In this document: one piece after another, positions 1 through 54,832 of the stretch | How the letters are laid out: every line of letters begins with the position of its first letter | Position numbering within the stretch: the first letter of the stretch is position 1 | Sequence record: MT708547.1 | Direction: 5' to 3' (one strand) | Length of the DNA: 64,000 nucleotides | Program-made: the position numbers and the translations under genes | Notes under the pieces: generated by a model | What the model saw: only the letters and a program-made list of their open reading frames with translations | Databases searched by the model: none | What the model was told of the DNA's origin: nothing

Positions 1-17
1 AGTCCGTTTATAAAGTC

Positions 18-31
18 GCACCCAGTGGGCT
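18..31 (-). repeat. Short-RNA core element (AGCCC-ACT-GGGTGC on - strand) at extreme left end
   Basis: gcacccagtgggct = reverse complement of family core; promoter unclear. Confidence 0.6.
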
Positions 32-149
32 ACATTTGTAACTATTCAGTACTGAATAATTCAATGCATATATTATTTCAGTACTTAATCATTAGCAAAC
101 TATTAATTTCAATATCTCCTTTAGATAATATTTCGTATCTTATATTAAC

Positions 150-208
150 AAAAATCTGAATAGCATGTCAAGAAAAATCTGGATTACCAACGAGAAAAAA
201 TCTGGATT
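150..208. repeat. Three AAAAATCTG(G/A)AT(T) repeats (another at 989-1000)
   Basis: 150-161, 172-185, 194-208; core AATC-TG-GATT is an inverted repeat. Confidence 0.7.
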
Positions 209-270
209 TTAAAAATTTTGAAATGTCGTTTATAGTTCAGGAAAAAAATGAAATTATAACAAGAAAATTG

Positions 271-299
271 TTGACATGGATATGCTGCCATTATATAAT
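271..299 (+). promoter_or_regulatory. Consensus sigma70 promoter
   Basis: TTGACA-17-TATAAT. Confidence 0.9.
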
Positions 300-305
300 G
301 TAATC

Positions 306-720
306 CTCAAGACGAGAGAATGTTCTCTCATAGAAAATGCGAAGAAGCCGAGTTTATCTGTCCCTGCGTGAGTGGGCTAACATTTGAATAGGACAATACG
401 TAGATGAATGAAAAAGGTTTAAAGGGAAGTATTTGATTCCCTGTAGTATAGTTAATGAGTTAGTACTGATATAGTTTAATCATTGAGTACTACTGTCGCA
501 AAGGGAAACCTTTGGCTTCCATGGGGAGTGATGACAGAAGGGCATTATCCTCCATATAGAGTTACTGCGAATAACTCCATAAGTTGGGTTGTGGCAAACC
601 TCCTAAAATAGTGAATCTACAGTACTACTGCTTGGTAGTACTGCTTTTAATTTAAAGAATCCTCTCCGCCAAGAAAGGTGCATGTAACTTGAACATGTGA
701 ACTACGGGAACAGTACTGAA
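306..720 (+). ncRNA. Candidate ~400-nt structured ncRNA
   Basis: Perfect promoter, no ORF, many stems (GAGAGAA/TTCTCTC, GTAGTA/TACTAC, CAAAGG-GAAA-CCTTTG, GAGTTA/TAACTC, CAGTACTAC/GTAGTACTG). Confidence 0.55.
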
Positions 721-791
721 TTATTCAGTACTAATTCCTCCCCAAATTCTGGATACAATGATGCTAGGCTTCAGTTAGTACTGAGTGAGAA

Positions 792-901
792 TGATAATGA
801 TTCTCATTTGAATTGGATGAGAATGATTCTCATTTACTATTGCAAATGATAATAGATTGCATTTACGAATGGTTCTCATTCGCAGATGATAATGATTCTT
901 A
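792..901. promoter_or_regulatory. Cluster of 3 strong + 2 weak Fur-box-like sites
   Basis: TGATAAT-G-ATTCTCA 792-806, TGAGAAT-G-ATTCTCA 818-832, TGATAAT-G-ATTCTTA 887-901; weak 847, 864. Confidence 0.75.
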
Positions 902-929
902 TTTGAAATTGATTTTTCCGATTTTTCCC

Positions 930-995
930 ATTAGCCACCCTTCAGCGTAGGGTTAATTTTTCCCCTGCCGAATCGGTTTTATATTTTCAAAATCT
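930..995 (-). ncRNA. Short-RNA family copy A
   Basis: - strand TTGTTT-17-TATGAT (1030-1002); ACCCT-8nt-AGGGTGG core. Confidence 0.45.
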
Positions 996-1036
996 GGATT
1001 AATCATATCAGTACTAACCAAGATAAACAATACCCC

Positions 1037-1051
1037 TTTACAAATCTTTAC
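1037..1051. promoter_or_regulatory. TTTAC-N5-TTTAC box (CpxR/RstA-like)
   Basis: TTTACAAATCTTTAC = revcomp GTAAA-N5-GTAAA. Confidence 0.6.
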
Positions 1052-1077
1052 AAAAAGATTCTAAATGTGAATACAAA

Positions 1078-1092
1078 TGATAATGATTCTCA
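1078..1092. promoter_or_regulatory. Fur-box-like site
   Basis: TGATAAT-G-ATTCTCA. Confidence 0.75.
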
Positions 1093-1099
1093 TTTACAG

Positions 1100-1149
1100 T
1101 ACTGAATACTTTTTCCCACGCCCTGGCGTCTCCGGTTCCTCCCGTCTAT
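1100..1149 (-). ncRNA. Short-RNA family copy B
   Basis: - strand TTGACT-16-TATAAT (1183-1156); CGG-GAGGAA-CCG stem, divergent core CGCCAGGGCGTGGG. Confidence 0.5.
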
Positions 1150-1251
1150 ATAAACATTATACAGTACTGAATAATTAAGTCAATACTATTTTTGCAAAAA
1201 GATTAAAATAAAATACTTGCAATCCTGGTTAGTACTATATTATAATGTTTA

Positions 1252-1300
1252 CAGTACTGAGAAAGTGCTTTTGCCCGCTAGGGTGCTGGGGAGTATGCGT
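1252..1300 (+). ncRNA. Short-RNA family copy C
   Basis: TTGCAA-18-TATAAT (1217-1246); GCCC-GCTA-GGGTGC-N6-GTAT. Confidence 0.55.
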
Positions 1301-1304
1301 TAAA

Positions 1305-1319
1305 TGATAATGAGAATCA
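1305..1319. promoter_or_regulatory. Fur-box-like site between convergent copies C and D
   Basis: TGATAAT-G-AGAATCA. Confidence 0.65.
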
Positions 1320-1334
1320 TTTACAGTACTGGAC

Positions 1335-1370
1335 GGATTTTCCCACCCTCGGGGGTCTCTTTTTGTCTAT
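1335..1370 (-). ncRNA. Short-RNA family copy D
   Basis: - strand TTGATA-16-TATAAT (1404-1377); CCCC-GA-GGGTGG core. Confidence 0.5.
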
Positions 1371-1409
1371 GTAGTAATTATACAGTACTGAGATACTATA
1401 TCAAGTCTC

Positions 1410-1424
1410 TTTACAAATCTTTAC
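1410..1424. promoter_or_regulatory. TTTAC-N5-TTTAC box
   Basis: exact TTTACAAATCTTTAC. Confidence 0.6.
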
Positions 1425-1522
1425 AAAGCACCCGGGGAGATTTTTCTTTACAATAAAAGTACTTGCATAATTCTTTCAGTACTGACATAATGACTACATC
1501 AACCAATTAGGAGTATTACCAG

Positions 1523-1735
1523 ATGGCTACCATTACGACCCTGTTAAAAAATGCAAAAACTGTATTATTCAGTGATGACGAACATACCAACGTGGATATC
1601 ACTGGAGTTAAAAACCTGTTGGATATCAAAAAGATGTTTTCTATTCATGGCAAACTTACGCGTGTTGGCACGTTCGGAAATAAAGTATGTTACCGCCTTT
1701 CAAGTGATTATAATTTCACACTAACTTTACTGTAA
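1523..1735 (+). CDS. Hypothetical protein, paralog of C-terminal half of 4362-4721
   Basis: SD + promoter; LKNAKTVLFxDDE shared. Confidence 0.85.
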   Translation: MATITTLLKNAKTVLFSDDEHTNVDITGVKNLLDIKKMFSIHGKLTRVGTFGNKVCYRLSSDYNFTLTLL

Positions 1736-1798
1736 AAGTACTTGCATAATTCTTTCAGTACTACTATTATATATTCATACCAAAACAGGAGAACTACT

Positions 1799-1969
1799 AT
1801 GAAATATGCATACTCTTATTTTATTGTAAACGGTGAACGTTTGACCATCGGCCAGGCCGCTGTAAAACATGAAATCATTTGCGATGATCTGGCGAAGATG
1901 CTACCAGGTGAAACGCAAGAGTTTTACAAAGGCTTTCAGAAAGTCGTTGTAACACGTTGCGAAGATTGA
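1799..1969 (+). CDS. Hypothetical protein (56 aa)
   Basis: AGGAG SD before ATG 1799. Confidence 0.75.
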   Translation: MKYAYSYFIVNGERLTIGQAAVKHEIICDDLAKMLPGETQEFYKGFQKVVVTRCED

Positions 1970-2034
1970 TCCAGTACTTGGGGCGGAAACGCCCCTAAAA
2001 CGTCCTGTAACGCATTGTAAGAGGTTTTTATAAT

Positions 2035-2262
2035 ATGGCTATAGAAGTTAACGCTGGGGATATAAAGTCGGCTGTACTGCGTACCCTGAAAGCATACGGC
2101 AGAAAGCTGAATGATCGCAACGTTCCCTATTATTTCCTTGCTGCTACTCATAAAATGGCAATCGCTGAGGCTCGCGGGTGGTTGAATGATCGCAGTACTG
2201 TAAAGAGTACCAGAACAAGAAACGCAATTGAGCGATGGATAAAAGAATTAGAACATTTTTAA
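2035..2262 (+). CDS. Hypothetical protein
   Basis: ORF with GAGG SD, followed by terminator. Confidence 0.7.
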   Translation: MAIEVNAGDIKSAVLRTLKAYGRKLNDRNVPYYFLAATHKMAIAEARGWLNDRSTVKSTRTRNAIERWIKELEHF

Positions 2263-2282
2263 TAATTCAGTACTGAAATTAT

Positions 2283-2306
2283 AAGGGGAGTTAATTAATT
2301 CCCCTT
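2283..2306 (+). terminator. Hairpin terminator
   Basis: AAGGGGAG-TTAATTAA-TTCCCCTT. Confidence 0.55.
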
Positions 2307-2319
2307 TACAAATCTTTAC
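2305..2319. promoter_or_regulatory. TTTAC-N5-TTTAC box 10 nt upstream of -35
   Basis: exact match. Confidence 0.6.
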
Positions 2320-2363
2320 AAAAGAATGGTTGACATAGTATTCCAGTACTGGTATTATGTATT

Positions 2364-2415
2364 CATAGACAGAACAAGTCTTTGGCCCACCGGGTGCGGA
2401 GGAGTATATATTAGA
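2364..2415 (+). ncRNA. Short-RNA family copy E
   Basis: TTGACA-17-TATTAT (2330-2358); GAC-AGAACAA-GTC; GCCC-ACC-GGGTGC-N6-GTAT. Confidence 0.65.
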
Positions 2416-2420
2416 TTGAA

Positions 2421-2441
2421 TGAGAATGATAATGATTCTCA
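2421..2441. promoter_or_regulatory. Extended Fur-box-like site between convergent copies E and F
   Basis: TGAGAATGATAATGATTCTCA. Confidence 0.75.
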
Positions 2442-2451
2442 TTTACTGTAC

Positions 2452-2499
2452 TGAATATATTTCCGCACCCTTTTGGGCTTTTCGATTACTTTCTACTTG
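2452..2499 (-). ncRNA. Short-RNA family copy F
   Basis: - strand TTGCAT-16-TATACT (2533-2506); GCCC-AAAA-GGGTGC. Confidence 0.55.
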
Positions 2500-2538
2500 T
2501 TAATAAGTATACCATAATCAGTACTGAATGCAATGGTC

Positions 2539-2553
2539 TTTACAAATCTTTAC
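2539..2553. promoter_or_regulatory. TTTAC-N5-TTTAC box
   Basis: exact match. Confidence 0.6.
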
Positions 2554-2650
2554 AAAAGAAAATAATTATAAAAAGTACTGAAAAAGTACTTGACGCAATA
2601 ATGTAGTACTGGCATAATACATCCATACCAAACAGAACGGAGTAACTAAA

Positions 2651-2938
2651 ATGTTTAATGAAAATGATCATATTGTTAAAGAGTTTTCTTTCAGTAAGCC
2701 GATCCATTTAGAAAACGGTGAAACGCTGGACAATAAATTTTATGGTAGTATTATTAAGCGTTATACATCGCGGAGTAGTACTGGAATTTTGTGGGAAGTG
2801 AATAAACAGTACAATGGTAATTCGCTGGTTGTCAATGAGTGGGAAAGTTATGCAGTAGCTGAAATGGATTTTTCAAACTTCATTACTGAATCTTTGAACG
2901 ATGATATTTTTTACAAGTTCACGGCGGAAAGGGTTTAA
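2651..2938 (+). CDS. Hypothetical protein
   Basis: cassette promoter + GGAG SD. Confidence 0.85.
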   Translation: MFNENDHIVKEFSFSKPIHLENGETLDNKFYGSIIKRYTSRSSTGILWEVNKQYNGNSLVVNEWESYAVAEMDFSNFITESLNDDIFYKFTAERV

Positions 2939-3054
2939 AAAGTTTTAAAGAGTACTTGACAACATAAACCAGTACTGTATAATGTATTGCATAGAAAGGA
3001 GATTCCAGAATAATGGAATCTCCGATAAAATAAACTAATCAGGAGTTAATTACC

Positions 3055-3666
3055 ATGAACGTTATCGATACCATCTATTCTAAATCTTTCGATGAACTGA
3101 ATGCAGAGCAGAAAGAAAAAGCAATTGATATTATGCGGGATCTGGAACGTCACGATTCAGATCCATTCTGGGCACAATTAATTAATGAAGATAAACGCGA
3201 ATTAATGAATAATGAATATGGTTTTACTGATACTGTAATTCATTATAGCGGCTTTTGCTCACAAGGTGACGGGGCGTCAATTAGTACTGAATCAATCGAC
3301 GCAGAGACGTTTTTACGCAAAATTAAAGCATGGTCGAAATTCCGTGTATTGCATAAACATTTCAATGATGGTACAATTACATTAAAGATCGAACGCAACG
3401 ATCATCGTTATTCTCATGAAAATACTGTTTCTGGTGTGGTGGATCTGGACTACGGCACTGAATTCACTGCTAAAAAGGAAGAGAAAGCGGAAGAACTTGA
3501 AACGCTTTTGACTGAAACTATTCGTGATCTTTCACGCCAGCATTATCAGGTTCTGAGCGATGAAAACGATTATCAAAATAGTGATGAAGCATTGATTGAA
3601 TTGATTAATGCAAATGATTATAATTTCAAAGTGGATAGTACTGGTAACGTATTGGGGTTAGCGTAA
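3055..3666 (+). CDS. Acidic conserved phage protein (YSGFxSQGDGAS ... SDEAxxExIxANxYxF family)
   Basis: motifs recalled from a widespread phage/plasmid family often loosely annotated 'antitoxin'; function unproven. Confidence 0.6.
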   Translation: MNVIDTIYSKSFDELNAEQKEKAIDIMRDLERHDSDPFWAQLINEDKRELMNNEYGFTDTVIHYSGFCSQGDGASISTESIDAETFLRKIKAWSKFRVLHKHFNDGTITLKIERNDHRYSHENTVSGVVDLDYGTEFTAKKEEKAEELETLLTETIRDLSRQHYQVLSDENDYQNSDEALIELINANDYNFKVDSTGNVLGLA

Positions 3667-54094: not shown

Positions 54095-54121
54095 AGGACG
54101 GCGTAAAAACCGTCCTTTTTT
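54095..54121 (+). terminator. Terminator
   Basis: AAGGACGG-CGTAAAAA-CCGTCCTT-TTT. Confidence 0.85.
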
Positions 54122-54125
54122 AATA

Positions 54126-54133
54126 TATAAATA
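54126..54133 (+). promoter_or_regulatory. Possible T4-type late promoter
   Basis: TATAAATA; also TATAAT at 54158. Confidence 0.35.
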
Positions 54134-54139
54134 TCTGAA

Positions 54140-54610
54140 CGAAAAATAGATTTAAGATATAATGTATGTAATTACAAGGATGTTGGATGCACAGGATGTG
54201 CATACACTAAAAACCTGATCCACTCGAAACAAGTAGAGGGCAGATGAGTATACCAACAATACGCCGTGTAGAGGATACCCGTTTAGGCGAGTCGACACGT
54301 TAAAGGGCAAAGGTAGCACGATTGCCCCAATCTCTCAGGAGATTGATAGGACGCGAATCCAGTTAAGTCTGGACATTAAGTGTAAAAAGGGAGATTATTT
54401 TCTTTTAGATATTTTGGAAATAATCACAGTATTGAATTGCTTGAATAGTTCGGTACTGAAGTGCAAGTATGTTTAAACTTGTGACCGTTGCATGTGACTG
54501 CGATAAGGGGAAACCGGGCAACCCGCCTCTGCCTAATAAATTAAATTTATTAGAATTCGCAATTCAAGGAATTTCGACAGCTACGAGCTTCAAGGCTTAG
54601 CTTTTTTATT
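54140..54610 (+). ncRNA. Candidate ~450-nt structured ncRNA
   Basis: GC-richer ORF-free island; GGGCAA/TTGCCC, CAATCTC/GAGATTG, TCCAG/CTGGA, CAAGT/ACTTG, GNRA loops, ends AGCT..AGCT-TTTTTT. Confidence 0.6.
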
Positions 54611-54777
54611 TCTCATCCCCTCCCTGTGGGGGGGATGAAAATATCTCGTGCAAACGCCTTCAAGTATTGAAATTCACGAAGTGAATTGAAATTACTTGTT
54701 CTGTAGTCAAACGACAGTGAGACGTGAGAACAAGTAATTTCTGCATGTATCAACGAAGTGACAACGAGTTGATACAT
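54611..54777. repeat. Cluster of long perfect hairpins
   Basis: AATTCAC-GAA-GTGAATT; 15-bp GAAATTACTTGTTCT/AGAACAAGTAATTTC; 10-bp ATGTATCAAC/GTTGATACAT. Confidence 0.8.
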
Positions 54778-54832
54778 AGCACTTTAAAACATTATTGAAT
54801 TCAATAATTAATATTATTATGGTTTTAAAGAA

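Follow-up and report, generated by a model that had tools for sequence, protein, structure and literature searches.

Introduction

The nearest precedent for the element described here comes from PA5oct, a Pseudomonas jumbo phage and distant RaK2-like relative, whose long direct terminal repeat contains two noncoding RNAs (ncRNAs), ncRNA001 and ncRNA002, of 236 and 451 nucleotides (nt); both are free of open reading frames (ORFs) and, by RNA sequencing (RNA-seq), abundant from early infection, with unknown function (PMC7318152). Their distances from the end are 8 and 22 kb, and no known promoter was reported for them by the authors (PMC7318152). Here we analyze the left end of Klebsiella phage Muenster, a 346,937-bp RaK2-like jumbo myophage of the genus Alcyoneusvirus; the window, the whole stretch of 64,000 nt that was analyzed, corresponds by sequence identity to positions 1 to 64000 of record MT708547.1. 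Only about 300 nt from the end, it carries a sigma-70 promoter followed by ∼345 nt predicted to be transcribed into a structured, ORF-free RNA. On comparative grounds, this element probably belongs to a so far undescribed family that RaK2-like jumbo phages carry 270 to 400 nt from their left genome ends. We saw no homology to the PA5oct ncRNAs: an nhmmer search of PA5oct positions 1 to 23000 with our three profiles gave no match; the PA5oct ncRNAs also contain no AGTACT or CYGCRAA motifs, both of which recur below.

Other described systems resemble the locus in part. At the T7 left end, the host promoters A1 to A3 are followed by an untranslated early leader with the RNase III site R0.3. The likeness lies in strong sigma-70 promoters a few hundred bases from an end (in T7, the end that enters first) and in the several hundred untranslated, structured bases that follow; the T7 leader, however, extends into gene 0.3 with no terminator between, does not form an RNA of its own, and has no sequence relation to the Muenster element. 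The phi29 pRNA (RF00044) is likewise a structured ncRNA at the extreme left end of a linear genome with a strong early promoter, but it has 174 nt and serves in the packaging motor of phi29-like podoviruses; Muenster has a T4-type terminase (PMC8407769), and its element has no Rfam match. ROOL and GOLLD, which are associated with phages or prophages, are also large and highly structured RNAs, and no biochemical role is known for them; they differ in size (∼500 to 800 nt), in their hosts, and in lying beside tRNA genes and not at a genome end, and their covariance models gave no match to the element even at E values of up to 10. In the origin transcripts ColE1 RNA II and the R-loop primers of T4 oriF and oriG, a promoter is followed by folded untranslated RNA beside repeated protein-binding sites or an A+T-rich stretch, but the Muenster element ends in a terminator-like hairpin and shows no sequence relation to them. 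Finally, the put-type antitermination RNA of HK022 consists of two stem-loops just after an early promoter that make RNA polymerase read through downstream terminators; hairpins do follow the Muenster promoter, but any read-through of this type would be conjectural.

RaK2-group jumbo phages are under development against Klebsiella and Escherichia coli. We put the chance that the region is a gene for a structured ncRNA, acting in trans as an immediate-early RNA, at about even, and we weigh this reading below against four others.

A candidate RNA element behind a conserved promoter

The element starts 271 nt from the physical left end as defined by PhageTerm, within a direct terminal repeat of 20,030 bp. 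A first-pass annotation, which a model had made from the letters of the stretch alone, had placed it near the genome end, and the window does begin at that end. It had also named a perfect promoter, and positions 271 to 299 indeed carry TTGACA and TATAAT separated by 17 nt, with 12 of 12 matches to the sigma-70 consensus. We compared Muenster with six Alcyoneusvirus relatives (K64-1, KP13-7, RaK2, RCIP0023, OU509535, and phiKp_21). The two hexamers show no change in any of them, whereas the spacer varies at 5 of its 17 positions, which is the pattern expected for a working promoter. Thus, a promoter of its own, as a free-standing bacterial or phage small RNA gene should have, is present at full consensus, with hexamers invariant in all seven phages.

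In the seven-genome alignment, positions 201 to 650 show 93 to 99% identity to Muenster, compared with 70 to 88% for the coding stretch at 1800 to 2300, so that the noncoding left end is under stronger constraint than the neighboring genes. Identity falls to 82% within 651 to 700, and a dip at 501 to 550 is due to one 30-nt deletion in phiKp_21, which lacks the insertion in the loop of hairpin P2. The other length changes among the relatives, a 19-nt insertion in the loop of the 620-643 hairpin in three phages and small insertions or deletions in the loop of the 443-493 hairpin, fall in loops as well.

The minimum-energy fold of positions 306 to 650 has −95.8 kcal/mol (z = −2.66), and none of 100 shuffled sequences was as stable. 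The features of the locus are as follows.

146 to 208, plus strand: three AAAAATCTGGA repeats at 23-nt spacing, just upstream of the promoter (repeat families D9 and D10); a fourth copy lies at 988 to 1000.

271 to 299, plus strand: sigma-70 promoter TTGACA-17-TATAAT, 12 of 12 consensus matches.

Near 306, plus strand: predicted transcription start, from the promoter position.

306 to 653, plus strand: predicted core transcript of ∼345 nt, ORF-free, with ∼10 helices (from folding, conservation, frame survey, and Rfam).

314 to 329, plus strand: 5' hairpin GAGAGA-AUGU-UCUCUC, which folds and is invariant except for one G-C to G-U change; being nearly invariant, it gives no covariation test.

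363 to 376, plus strand: hairpin CCUGC-GUGA-GUGGG, which folds, with a GNRA-type loop and two G-U pairs; the loop is GUUA in RaK2 and OU509535.

443 to 493, plus strand: long hairpin that folds with GUAGUA (443 to 448) paired with UACUAC (488 to 493), an inner AAUGA/UCAUU helix, and two AGUACU motifs.

493 to 537, plus strand: hairpin P2, CUGUC (493 to 497) paired with GACAG (533 to 537), with a 30-nt insertion in its loop that forms CAAAGG-GAAA-CCUUUG at 499 to 514.

547 to 589, plus strand: extended helix P3, AUCC (547 to 550) paired with GGGU (586 to 589), with P1 at its tip.

559 to 577, plus strand: hairpin P1, GAGUUA-CUGCGAA-UAACUC, at the tip of P3.

597 to 603, plus strand: AACCUCC/ACCUCCU motif, predicted to be single-stranded, aligned with Asteriusvirus GAACCUCA.

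620 to 653, plus strand: terminator-like hairpin P4 from the terminator scan, CAGUACUAC-loop-GUAGUACUG (stem at 620 to 643) followed by the tail CUUUUAAUUU.

654 to 703, plus strand: variable spacer with two alleles, then a conserved hairpin GGUGCAUGU-AACUUGA-ACAUGUGAACU (677 to 703), which contains a GUGCAUGU/ACAUGUGA stem at 678 to 700.

705 to 738, plus strand: near-perfect hairpin GGGAACAGUACUGAA-UUA-UUCAGUACUAAUUCC made of two CAGTACTG palindromes; inverted repeat I9 links it to 48 to 63.

785 to 905, no strand assigned: array of at least five Fur-box-like sites directly downstream, 97 to 99.7% conserved in Alcyoneusvirus.

GNRA-type loops occur at 368 to 371 (GUGA), 505 to 508 (GAAA), and 528 to 532 (GUGAU). 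All stems named in the first-pass annotation are present in the sequence and in the folds. Its length of ∼400 nt fits less well: from the promoter to the U run the RNA would have ∼345 nt, and ∼400 to 475 nt would be reached only with read-through. The hairpins at 677 to 703 (which include the annotated GTGCATGT stem) and at 705 to 738 may belong to such a longer form, the latter as its distal part. Positions 661 to 678 can also be read as a terminator-like hairpin on the minus strand.

The same layout in four further phage groups

By protein and DNA searches, we reached the left ends of phages from four more groups that share this layout: the Munch-like phages (Salmonella phage Munch and Klebsiella phage fENko-Kae01), Asteriusvirus (EJP2, A4, UE-S1, CRJP21, JNE01, Turkey5, 121Q, G17, and PBECO4), Eneladusvirus (Serratia phage BF and Yersinia phage fHe-Yen9-04), and Mimasvirus (CBB, GAP32, and XbC2). 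Together, the hosts of the groups are Klebsiella, Escherichia, Salmonella, Serratia, Erwinia, Yersinia, Pectobacterium, Cronobacter, and Xanthomonas. The common order begins with the genome end, short repeats (AAAATCTGGA in Muenster, AAATTTTGGAGTACC elsewhere), and a near-consensus sigma-70 promoter; it continues with 250 to 350 ORF-free bases and a long AGUACU-closed hairpin with a U run, and it closes with a repeat array and a box, ATTTTTCCATTAGC, that is conserved in all five groups.

The near-consensus promoter has an equivalent relative place in all five groups, at position 271 in Muenster, 331 in Munch and fENko-Kae01, ∼366 in CRJP21 and fEgEco12 (which matches at 366 to 779), 269 in BF, 294 in CBB, and 298 in XbC2. 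Wherever ends have been determined (Muenster, fENko-Kae01, CRJP21/fEgEco12, vB_Ec-M-J, and CBB), it lies 270 to 400 nt from the left end, and the 250 to 350 ORF-free bases follow; the ends come from PhageTerm (Muenster and fENko-Kae01), restriction mapping (fEgEco12), and read coverage (CBB). In the Alcyoneusvirus, Munch-like, Mimasvirus, and Eneladusvirus elements, a long terminal hairpin is followed by 4 to 6 U. The element was absent or wrongly annotated in all records inspected. In the RefSeq record of K64-1 (NC_027399), four hypothetical proteins of 20 to 43 codons are annotated across the homologous region (1445 to 1959); none of these frames is conserved, and they are therefore probably overannotations.

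Two scans went beyond these groups. With a conserved 23-mer, the only match in IMG/VR was RaK2 itself, and a metagenome scan (TACTGCGAATA, a gap of 0 to 3 nt, and ACTCC) gave at least 120 loci, of which, among the matches listed, none fit the three profiles. Many wastewater runs contain 40 to 56% of the 31-mers of the locus.

Covariation and a shared core

Nine Asteriusvirus elements, which diverge by up to 34%, gave a consensus of 82 pairs in six helices (P1 to P6), in which 95.4% of the cells are paired; sliding the partners by 1 to 3 columns lowered this to 29 to 51%. Ten pairs show compensatory changes, and many more change from G-C or A-U to G-U. In the control count, 11 pairs had double changes, compared with 4.5 ± 1.4 when the 3' partners were shuffled, and none of 500 shuffles reached the observed number. 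P5, which is not based on AGTACT, is among the helices with compensatory changes.

P1 and P2, both independent of AGTACT, are common to Muenster and Asteriusvirus and covary. Between these genera, P1 changes pair type at five of its six stem positions (A-U/G-C, U-A/C-G, and G-C/A-U/G-U), and pairing is kept in nearly all sequences, the lapses being A-A mismatches in EJP2 and Turkey5; its heptaloop, CYGCRAA, is conserved in both genera. P2 has the form CUGUC-GUGA-GACAG in Asteriusvirus, with the outer C-G replaced by A-U in JNE01 and Turkey5, and phiKp_21, which lacks the loop insertion, has CUGUC-GUGAU-GACAG, i.e., the Asteriusvirus form. Compensatory pairs on the promoter strand are thus found within Asteriusvirus and, across genera, in P1 and P2.

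Profile searches, with rough E values and a small database, pointed to the same core. An nhmmer profile of Asteriusvirus found Munch (E = 1.8e−9) and Muenster 596 to 733 (E = 1e−3), aligning AACCUC, the AGUACU-closed hairpin, and the tail UUUUAAU. A covariance model (R1) built from Asteriusvirus P2 to P4 found seven of seven Alcyoneusvirus loci at the homologous site (E = 7e−4 to 0.03); its match to phiKp_21 is full-length and collinear (E = 7e−4), and its match to Muenster 572 to 654 (E = 0.013) is the best in the window. A shared core of P2, P3, AACCUC, P4, and UUUUAAU is detectable by profile or covariance model. In our reading of the alignments, Muenster P2, P3, AACCUCC, P4, and UUUUAAU are collinear with Asteriusvirus P2, P3, GAACCUCA, P4, and AUUUUAAUC, and the extra 5' domain of Muenster (306 to 492) appears to be genus specific. 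The first-pass annotation had named lack of structural conservation in relatives as the outcome that would speak against a structured RNA; what we found instead were homologous or syntenic elements in five groups, compensatory changes within Asteriusvirus, and two covarying hairpins that it shares with Muenster.

Strand preference and the possibility of a DNA element

In ten representative elements, the plus strand folds better than shuffled sequences (z = −2.6 to −7.1), and its energy is below that of the minus strand in 10 of 10. Consensus energies for the plus and minus strands are −81.4 versus −56.0 kcal/mol for the Asteriusvirus alignment, −36.6 versus −24.3 kcal/mol for Mimasvirus plus Eneladusvirus, and −81.4 versus −70.5 kcal/mol for Alcyoneusvirus. 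On the promoter strand, the Asteriusvirus alignment contains 98 G-U cells versus 6 A-C cells, a count to be read with the caveat that the structure was derived from the same alignment and that the sequences are mutually related. Since G-U cells far outnumber A-C cells and the consensus energy is lower on the promoter strand, the asymmetry fits an RNA made from that strand and not a DNA cruciform. Together, these comparisons support a conserved structured RNA element on the promoter strand.

They also bear on the possibility, which we consider unlikely, that the region is a cis-acting DNA region of the genome end, a replication origin or a site of terminase or end recognition. Transcription would then only activate or prime replication through an R-loop, as at T4 oriF/oriG or with ColE1 RNA II, the repeats and arrays would bind an initiator or the small terminase, and single-stranded DNA would adopt the hairpins. 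The constant distance from the physical end favors this, as do the repeated motifs on both sides (146 to 208, 745 to 757, and 988 to 1000), downstream arrays that keep their place and change their repeat unit between genera, and the conservation of box ATTTTTCCATTAGC in all five groups. RaK2-like phages also have T4-like replication genes (PMC8407769, PMC5259590). Against it stand the G-U over A-C bias and the promoter-strand consensus energy, which fit RNA better than duplex or cruciform DNA, and the promoter hexamers, which are clearly under selection. The whole-genome cumulative GC skew of RaK2 tracks gene orientation only, has no turning point at the locus, and is uninformative about an origin.

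The repeats flanking the element may be protein-binding sites of the genome end. The short motif AAAAATCTGGATT occurs on both sides of it (146 to 208, 745 to 757, and 988 to 1000), with three copies in 23-nt phase, and the relatives have AAATTTTGGAGTACC or GAATTTTGGGTGTAC at matching places; their AAATTTTGGAGTACC-type repeats lie between the genome end and the promoter.

Coding potential and known RNA families

Returning to the proposed ncRNA gene, we surveyed frames of at least 12 codons in the six relatives. Short frames of 13 to 42 codons are present, but in each case at least one relative has a stop codon or frameshift, and ribosome-binding sites are absent from all of them. The element had been described as having no ORF, which holds in the useful sense that no frame is intact across all six relatives, as is expected of a free-standing small RNA gene. 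A small protein is, in our view, a very improbable product. Examples would be a 42-codon frame (483 to 611) and a 23-codon frame (320 to 391). The 42-codon frame is intact in five of six relatives, and its two insertions or deletions (3 nt and 30 nt) are multiples of three; yet it starts with TTG, lacks a ribosome-binding site, and has a frameshift in OU509535. Two relatives carry a frameshift in the 23-codon frame, whose AUG lies within the loop of the 314-329 hairpin, all other frames are broken in some relative, and the same sequence holds the covarying hairpins P1 and P2.

A search with the families of Rfam 15, the check that the first-pass annotation had proposed, gave no match at the gathering score in the whole window; at E values of up to 10, positions 1 to 1600 gave three chance-level matches only, each far under threshold. 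The classes covered included 6S, pRNA, ROOL, GOLLD, tmRNA, RNase P, ribozymes, and riboswitches. ARAGORN found no tRNA or tmRNA genes in positions 1 to 3000, and no paper describing the element was found in a literature search, so that calling it unrecognized was justified. A second claim, that its 3' part resembles a module of an RNA at 54 kb, was not borne out: between 300 to 800 and the ORF-free stretch at 54.1 to 54.83 kb, the best local alignment score was 21, compared with a shuffled mean of 21.4, and 187 of 300 shuffles scored as high. That stretch (54100 to 54830) lies between two genes and has a promoter-like site, several hairpins, and no Rfam match.

Some specific identities were also considered and rejected. 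No similar DNA was present in the E. coli genome collection searched, so that, as far as this collection goes, the element was not copied from a host RNA gene. A CsrB-like sponge was dismissed because a hand count gave 4 GGA in ∼345 nt, roughly the chance number. ATTCGCA(G), a candidate kissing partner for the P1 loop, is present in the Fur-type arrays of both Muenster (878) and Munch (702), but no Asteriusvirus locus contains a complement, and we set it aside as a product of chance or common descent. Mimicry of the 16S rRNA 3' tail was rejected after comparison with the last 45 nt of E. coli 16S rRNA, since beyond the CCUCC(U) core the alignment is at chance level in Muenster and most relatives. 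CCUCC itself, the anti-Shine-Dalgarno core, has eight plus-strand copies in the window, three of them in the element (549, 599, and 737). The Asteriusvirus elements (L014 to L022) have two to three copies each, mostly as CCUCCU, and those of Munch, BF, Yen9-04, CBB, and GAP32 have none.

Observations that weigh against a free-standing RNA

The reading as a structured RNA gene has to be set against several observations, which we gather here. In Muenster itself, the reverse strand scores z = −3.34, slightly better than the plus strand, so that a single-sequence fold picks no strand. Within Alcyoneusvirus, 0 of 106 pairs, and 0 of 101 in a second fold alignment, show compensatory changes, because the sequences are too similar, and the Muenster-specific 5' half (306 to 492) carries no covariation support. 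Between groups the 5' halves cannot be aligned, and within Mimasvirus not even the 5' parts can. The order of P1 relative to P2 also differs between genera, with P1 at the 5' end in Asteriusvirus; together with the unalignable 5' halves, this different place of P1 ruled out a single alignment of all five groups. No observation singles out one partner or target.

A further objection concerns the motif AGTACT, a genome-wide DNA motif with 272 copies in the window versus 21 expected that is tied to early promoters. As a palindrome, it automatically creates the hairpins P4 and 705 to 738, and AGTACT-based stems, given this abundance and the link to early promoters, are weak evidence by themselves. 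The element might then have no function of its own and consist of promoter and terminator modules, decayed or spare, piled up around the palindrome, its similarity among close relatives being kept by adjacency to essential terminal sequences and a homogenized repeat. We regard this as quite improbable. The 13-fold enrichment of AGTACT and its belonging to early promoters fit such a pile, as do the dependence of P4, 705 to 738, and part of 443 to 493 on the palindrome, the unalignable 5' halves, and the lack of covariation inside Alcyoneusvirus. It accounts poorly for the compensatory changes in P1, P2, and Asteriusvirus P5, which are not built on AGTACT, for conservation above that of the adjacent genes, for the invariant promoter hexamers, and for the confinement of insertions and deletions to loops. 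A screen of closely spaced AGTACT pairs in the window found no AGTACT-closed hairpin with a T run behind it other than P4. AGTACT occurs mostly as CAGTACTG, 21 successive pairs are exactly 20 nt apart, and pairs form an early-promoter type, AAAGTACTTGCA ... CAGTACTGACATAAT, with an extended −10; a protein that reads the palindrome is a reasonable guess.

The 3' end raises the last objection. The 620-643 hairpin with CUUUUAAUUU passes the terminator scan, but its stem has only four G-C pairs and three relatives have a 25-nt loop. P4, the putative terminator of Muenster, moreover aligns with an internal P4 and AUUUUAAUC in Asteriusvirus, where the U run after P4 is broken in four of nine sequences; because P4 is internal there, the 3' end in Muenster is uncertain, at ∼650 or further. 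Four public RNA runs mapped on positions 1 to 3000 gave wastewater metatranscriptome contigs of read length on both sides of the promoter, for which DNA carry-over is possible; one contig extends past 657.

These points bear on a reading that we consider somewhat unlikely, in which the element is the structured 5' leader of an immediate-early transcription unit, acting in cis, and not a free RNA. As at the T7 left end, the first strong host promoter would contribute to pulling in the genome; the hairpins would act as RNase III-type processing sites, attenuators, or antitermination signals, and the downstream Fur-box array would be a protein roadblock gating read-through into the early genes. 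A promoter 270 to 400 nt from the end in all groups suits this. So do the weak U run as the tail of P4, the internal position of P4 in the Asteriusvirus element, which has no clear terminator there, the long and nearly perfect helices (443 to 493 and Asteriusvirus P6, with ∼27 pairs), the predicted protein-binding arrays directly downstream on the same strand, and the single contig beyond 657. However, the first genes (1304 and 1523) have promoters of their own at 1217 to 1246 and 1461 to 1490, a long hairpin with 4 to 6 U ends the elements of Alcyoneusvirus, the Munch-like phages, Mimasvirus, and Eneladusvirus, and ∼650 nt more of noncoding DNA separate the element from the first gene.

Proposed role of the RNA

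For the reading as a trans-acting RNA, we infer the following steps, including transcription, the RNA ends, action in trans, and any partner, from the features above. Unmodified host sigma-70 RNA polymerase would transcribe from the promoter at 271 to 299, starting near 306, and could do so once the terminal repeat has entered the cell; both terminal copies could serve as the template. The U run behind the AGUACU-closed hairpin, at ∼650, would probably terminate most transcripts, giving ∼345 nt, and some may continue to ∼740 to 780. The RNA would fold into about ten helices with GNRA-type loops and, as an abundant immediate-early RNA acting in trans, would hold a host or phage protein as a decoy or scaffold during takeover. 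The conserved loops, namely, CYGCRAA, the GNRA loops, and the exposed ACCUCCU, would be its contact points. The first-pass annotation had put the RNA among the first transcripts of infection; we likewise infer this from the consensus host promoter and the terminal position.

What the comparison yields is probably a candidate new family of phage ncRNAs with a presumptive mechanism. The fullest version of this proposal can be offered only tentatively: a new family of large structured RNAs at the terminal repeat end in at least five RaK2-like groups, the first product made by the unmodified host polymerase, serving as a decoy or scaffold or as a part in end replication or processing. If correct, a conserved and probably very abundant noncoding first transcript would represent a new factor in host takeover and a new structured RNA class for Rfam, and an RNA decoy or scaffold would target a host factor of defense, translation, or RNA decay. 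The comparative set (five groups; promoter, P1, P2, P4, and the CYGCRAA loop) provides an alignment ready for covariation tests and for the choice of loops for mutation.

Downstream arrays and neighboring genes

The 1.3-kb stretch around the element is without genes in the depositors' annotation, in which the first coding sequence is at 1304. Its downstream part contains the Fur-box-like array, and positions 751 to 900 are 97 to 99.7% identical among the seven Alcyoneusviruses. Further Fur-box-like sites lie at 1076 to 1097, 1303 to 1327, and 2419 to 2446. The E. coli Fur consensus with up to three mismatches has 5 matches in the 64 kb versus 0.11 expected, all within 787 to 2446, and a local Fur-like unit, AATGATAATGATTCTCATT, recurs with 0 to 3 mismatches. 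Munch also has a Fur-box-like array, and Asteriusvirus, Mimasvirus, and Eneladusvirus have arrays of other units (TAGACGGCTAAACG and GGATGGATAGA) at the equivalent place. The array hints at a link between the host iron regulator and the phage terminal region.

Early genes downstream (2035 to 2262 and the stretch at 3055 to 3666) encode a 75-amino-acid protein, for which the depositors note HHpred matches to sigma factors, and a 203-amino-acid homologue of a YeeU-like antitoxin. Relatives of the latter occur in ∼200 phage records, many of them E. coli Vequintavirus-type phages.

A repeated element at 1262 to 1400 and 2315 to 2477 comprises a Fur-like box flanked by a GC-rich inverted repeat, CCCGCTAGGGTG ... 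CACCCTCGGGGG, and continues with a T run and then a minus-strand promoter-like site. It is more widely conserved than the left-end RNA element, with 71 to 88% identity in jumbo phages of Erwinia, Serratia, Yersinia, Cronobacter, and Pectobacterium, where it mostly lies ∼1 kb into the record.

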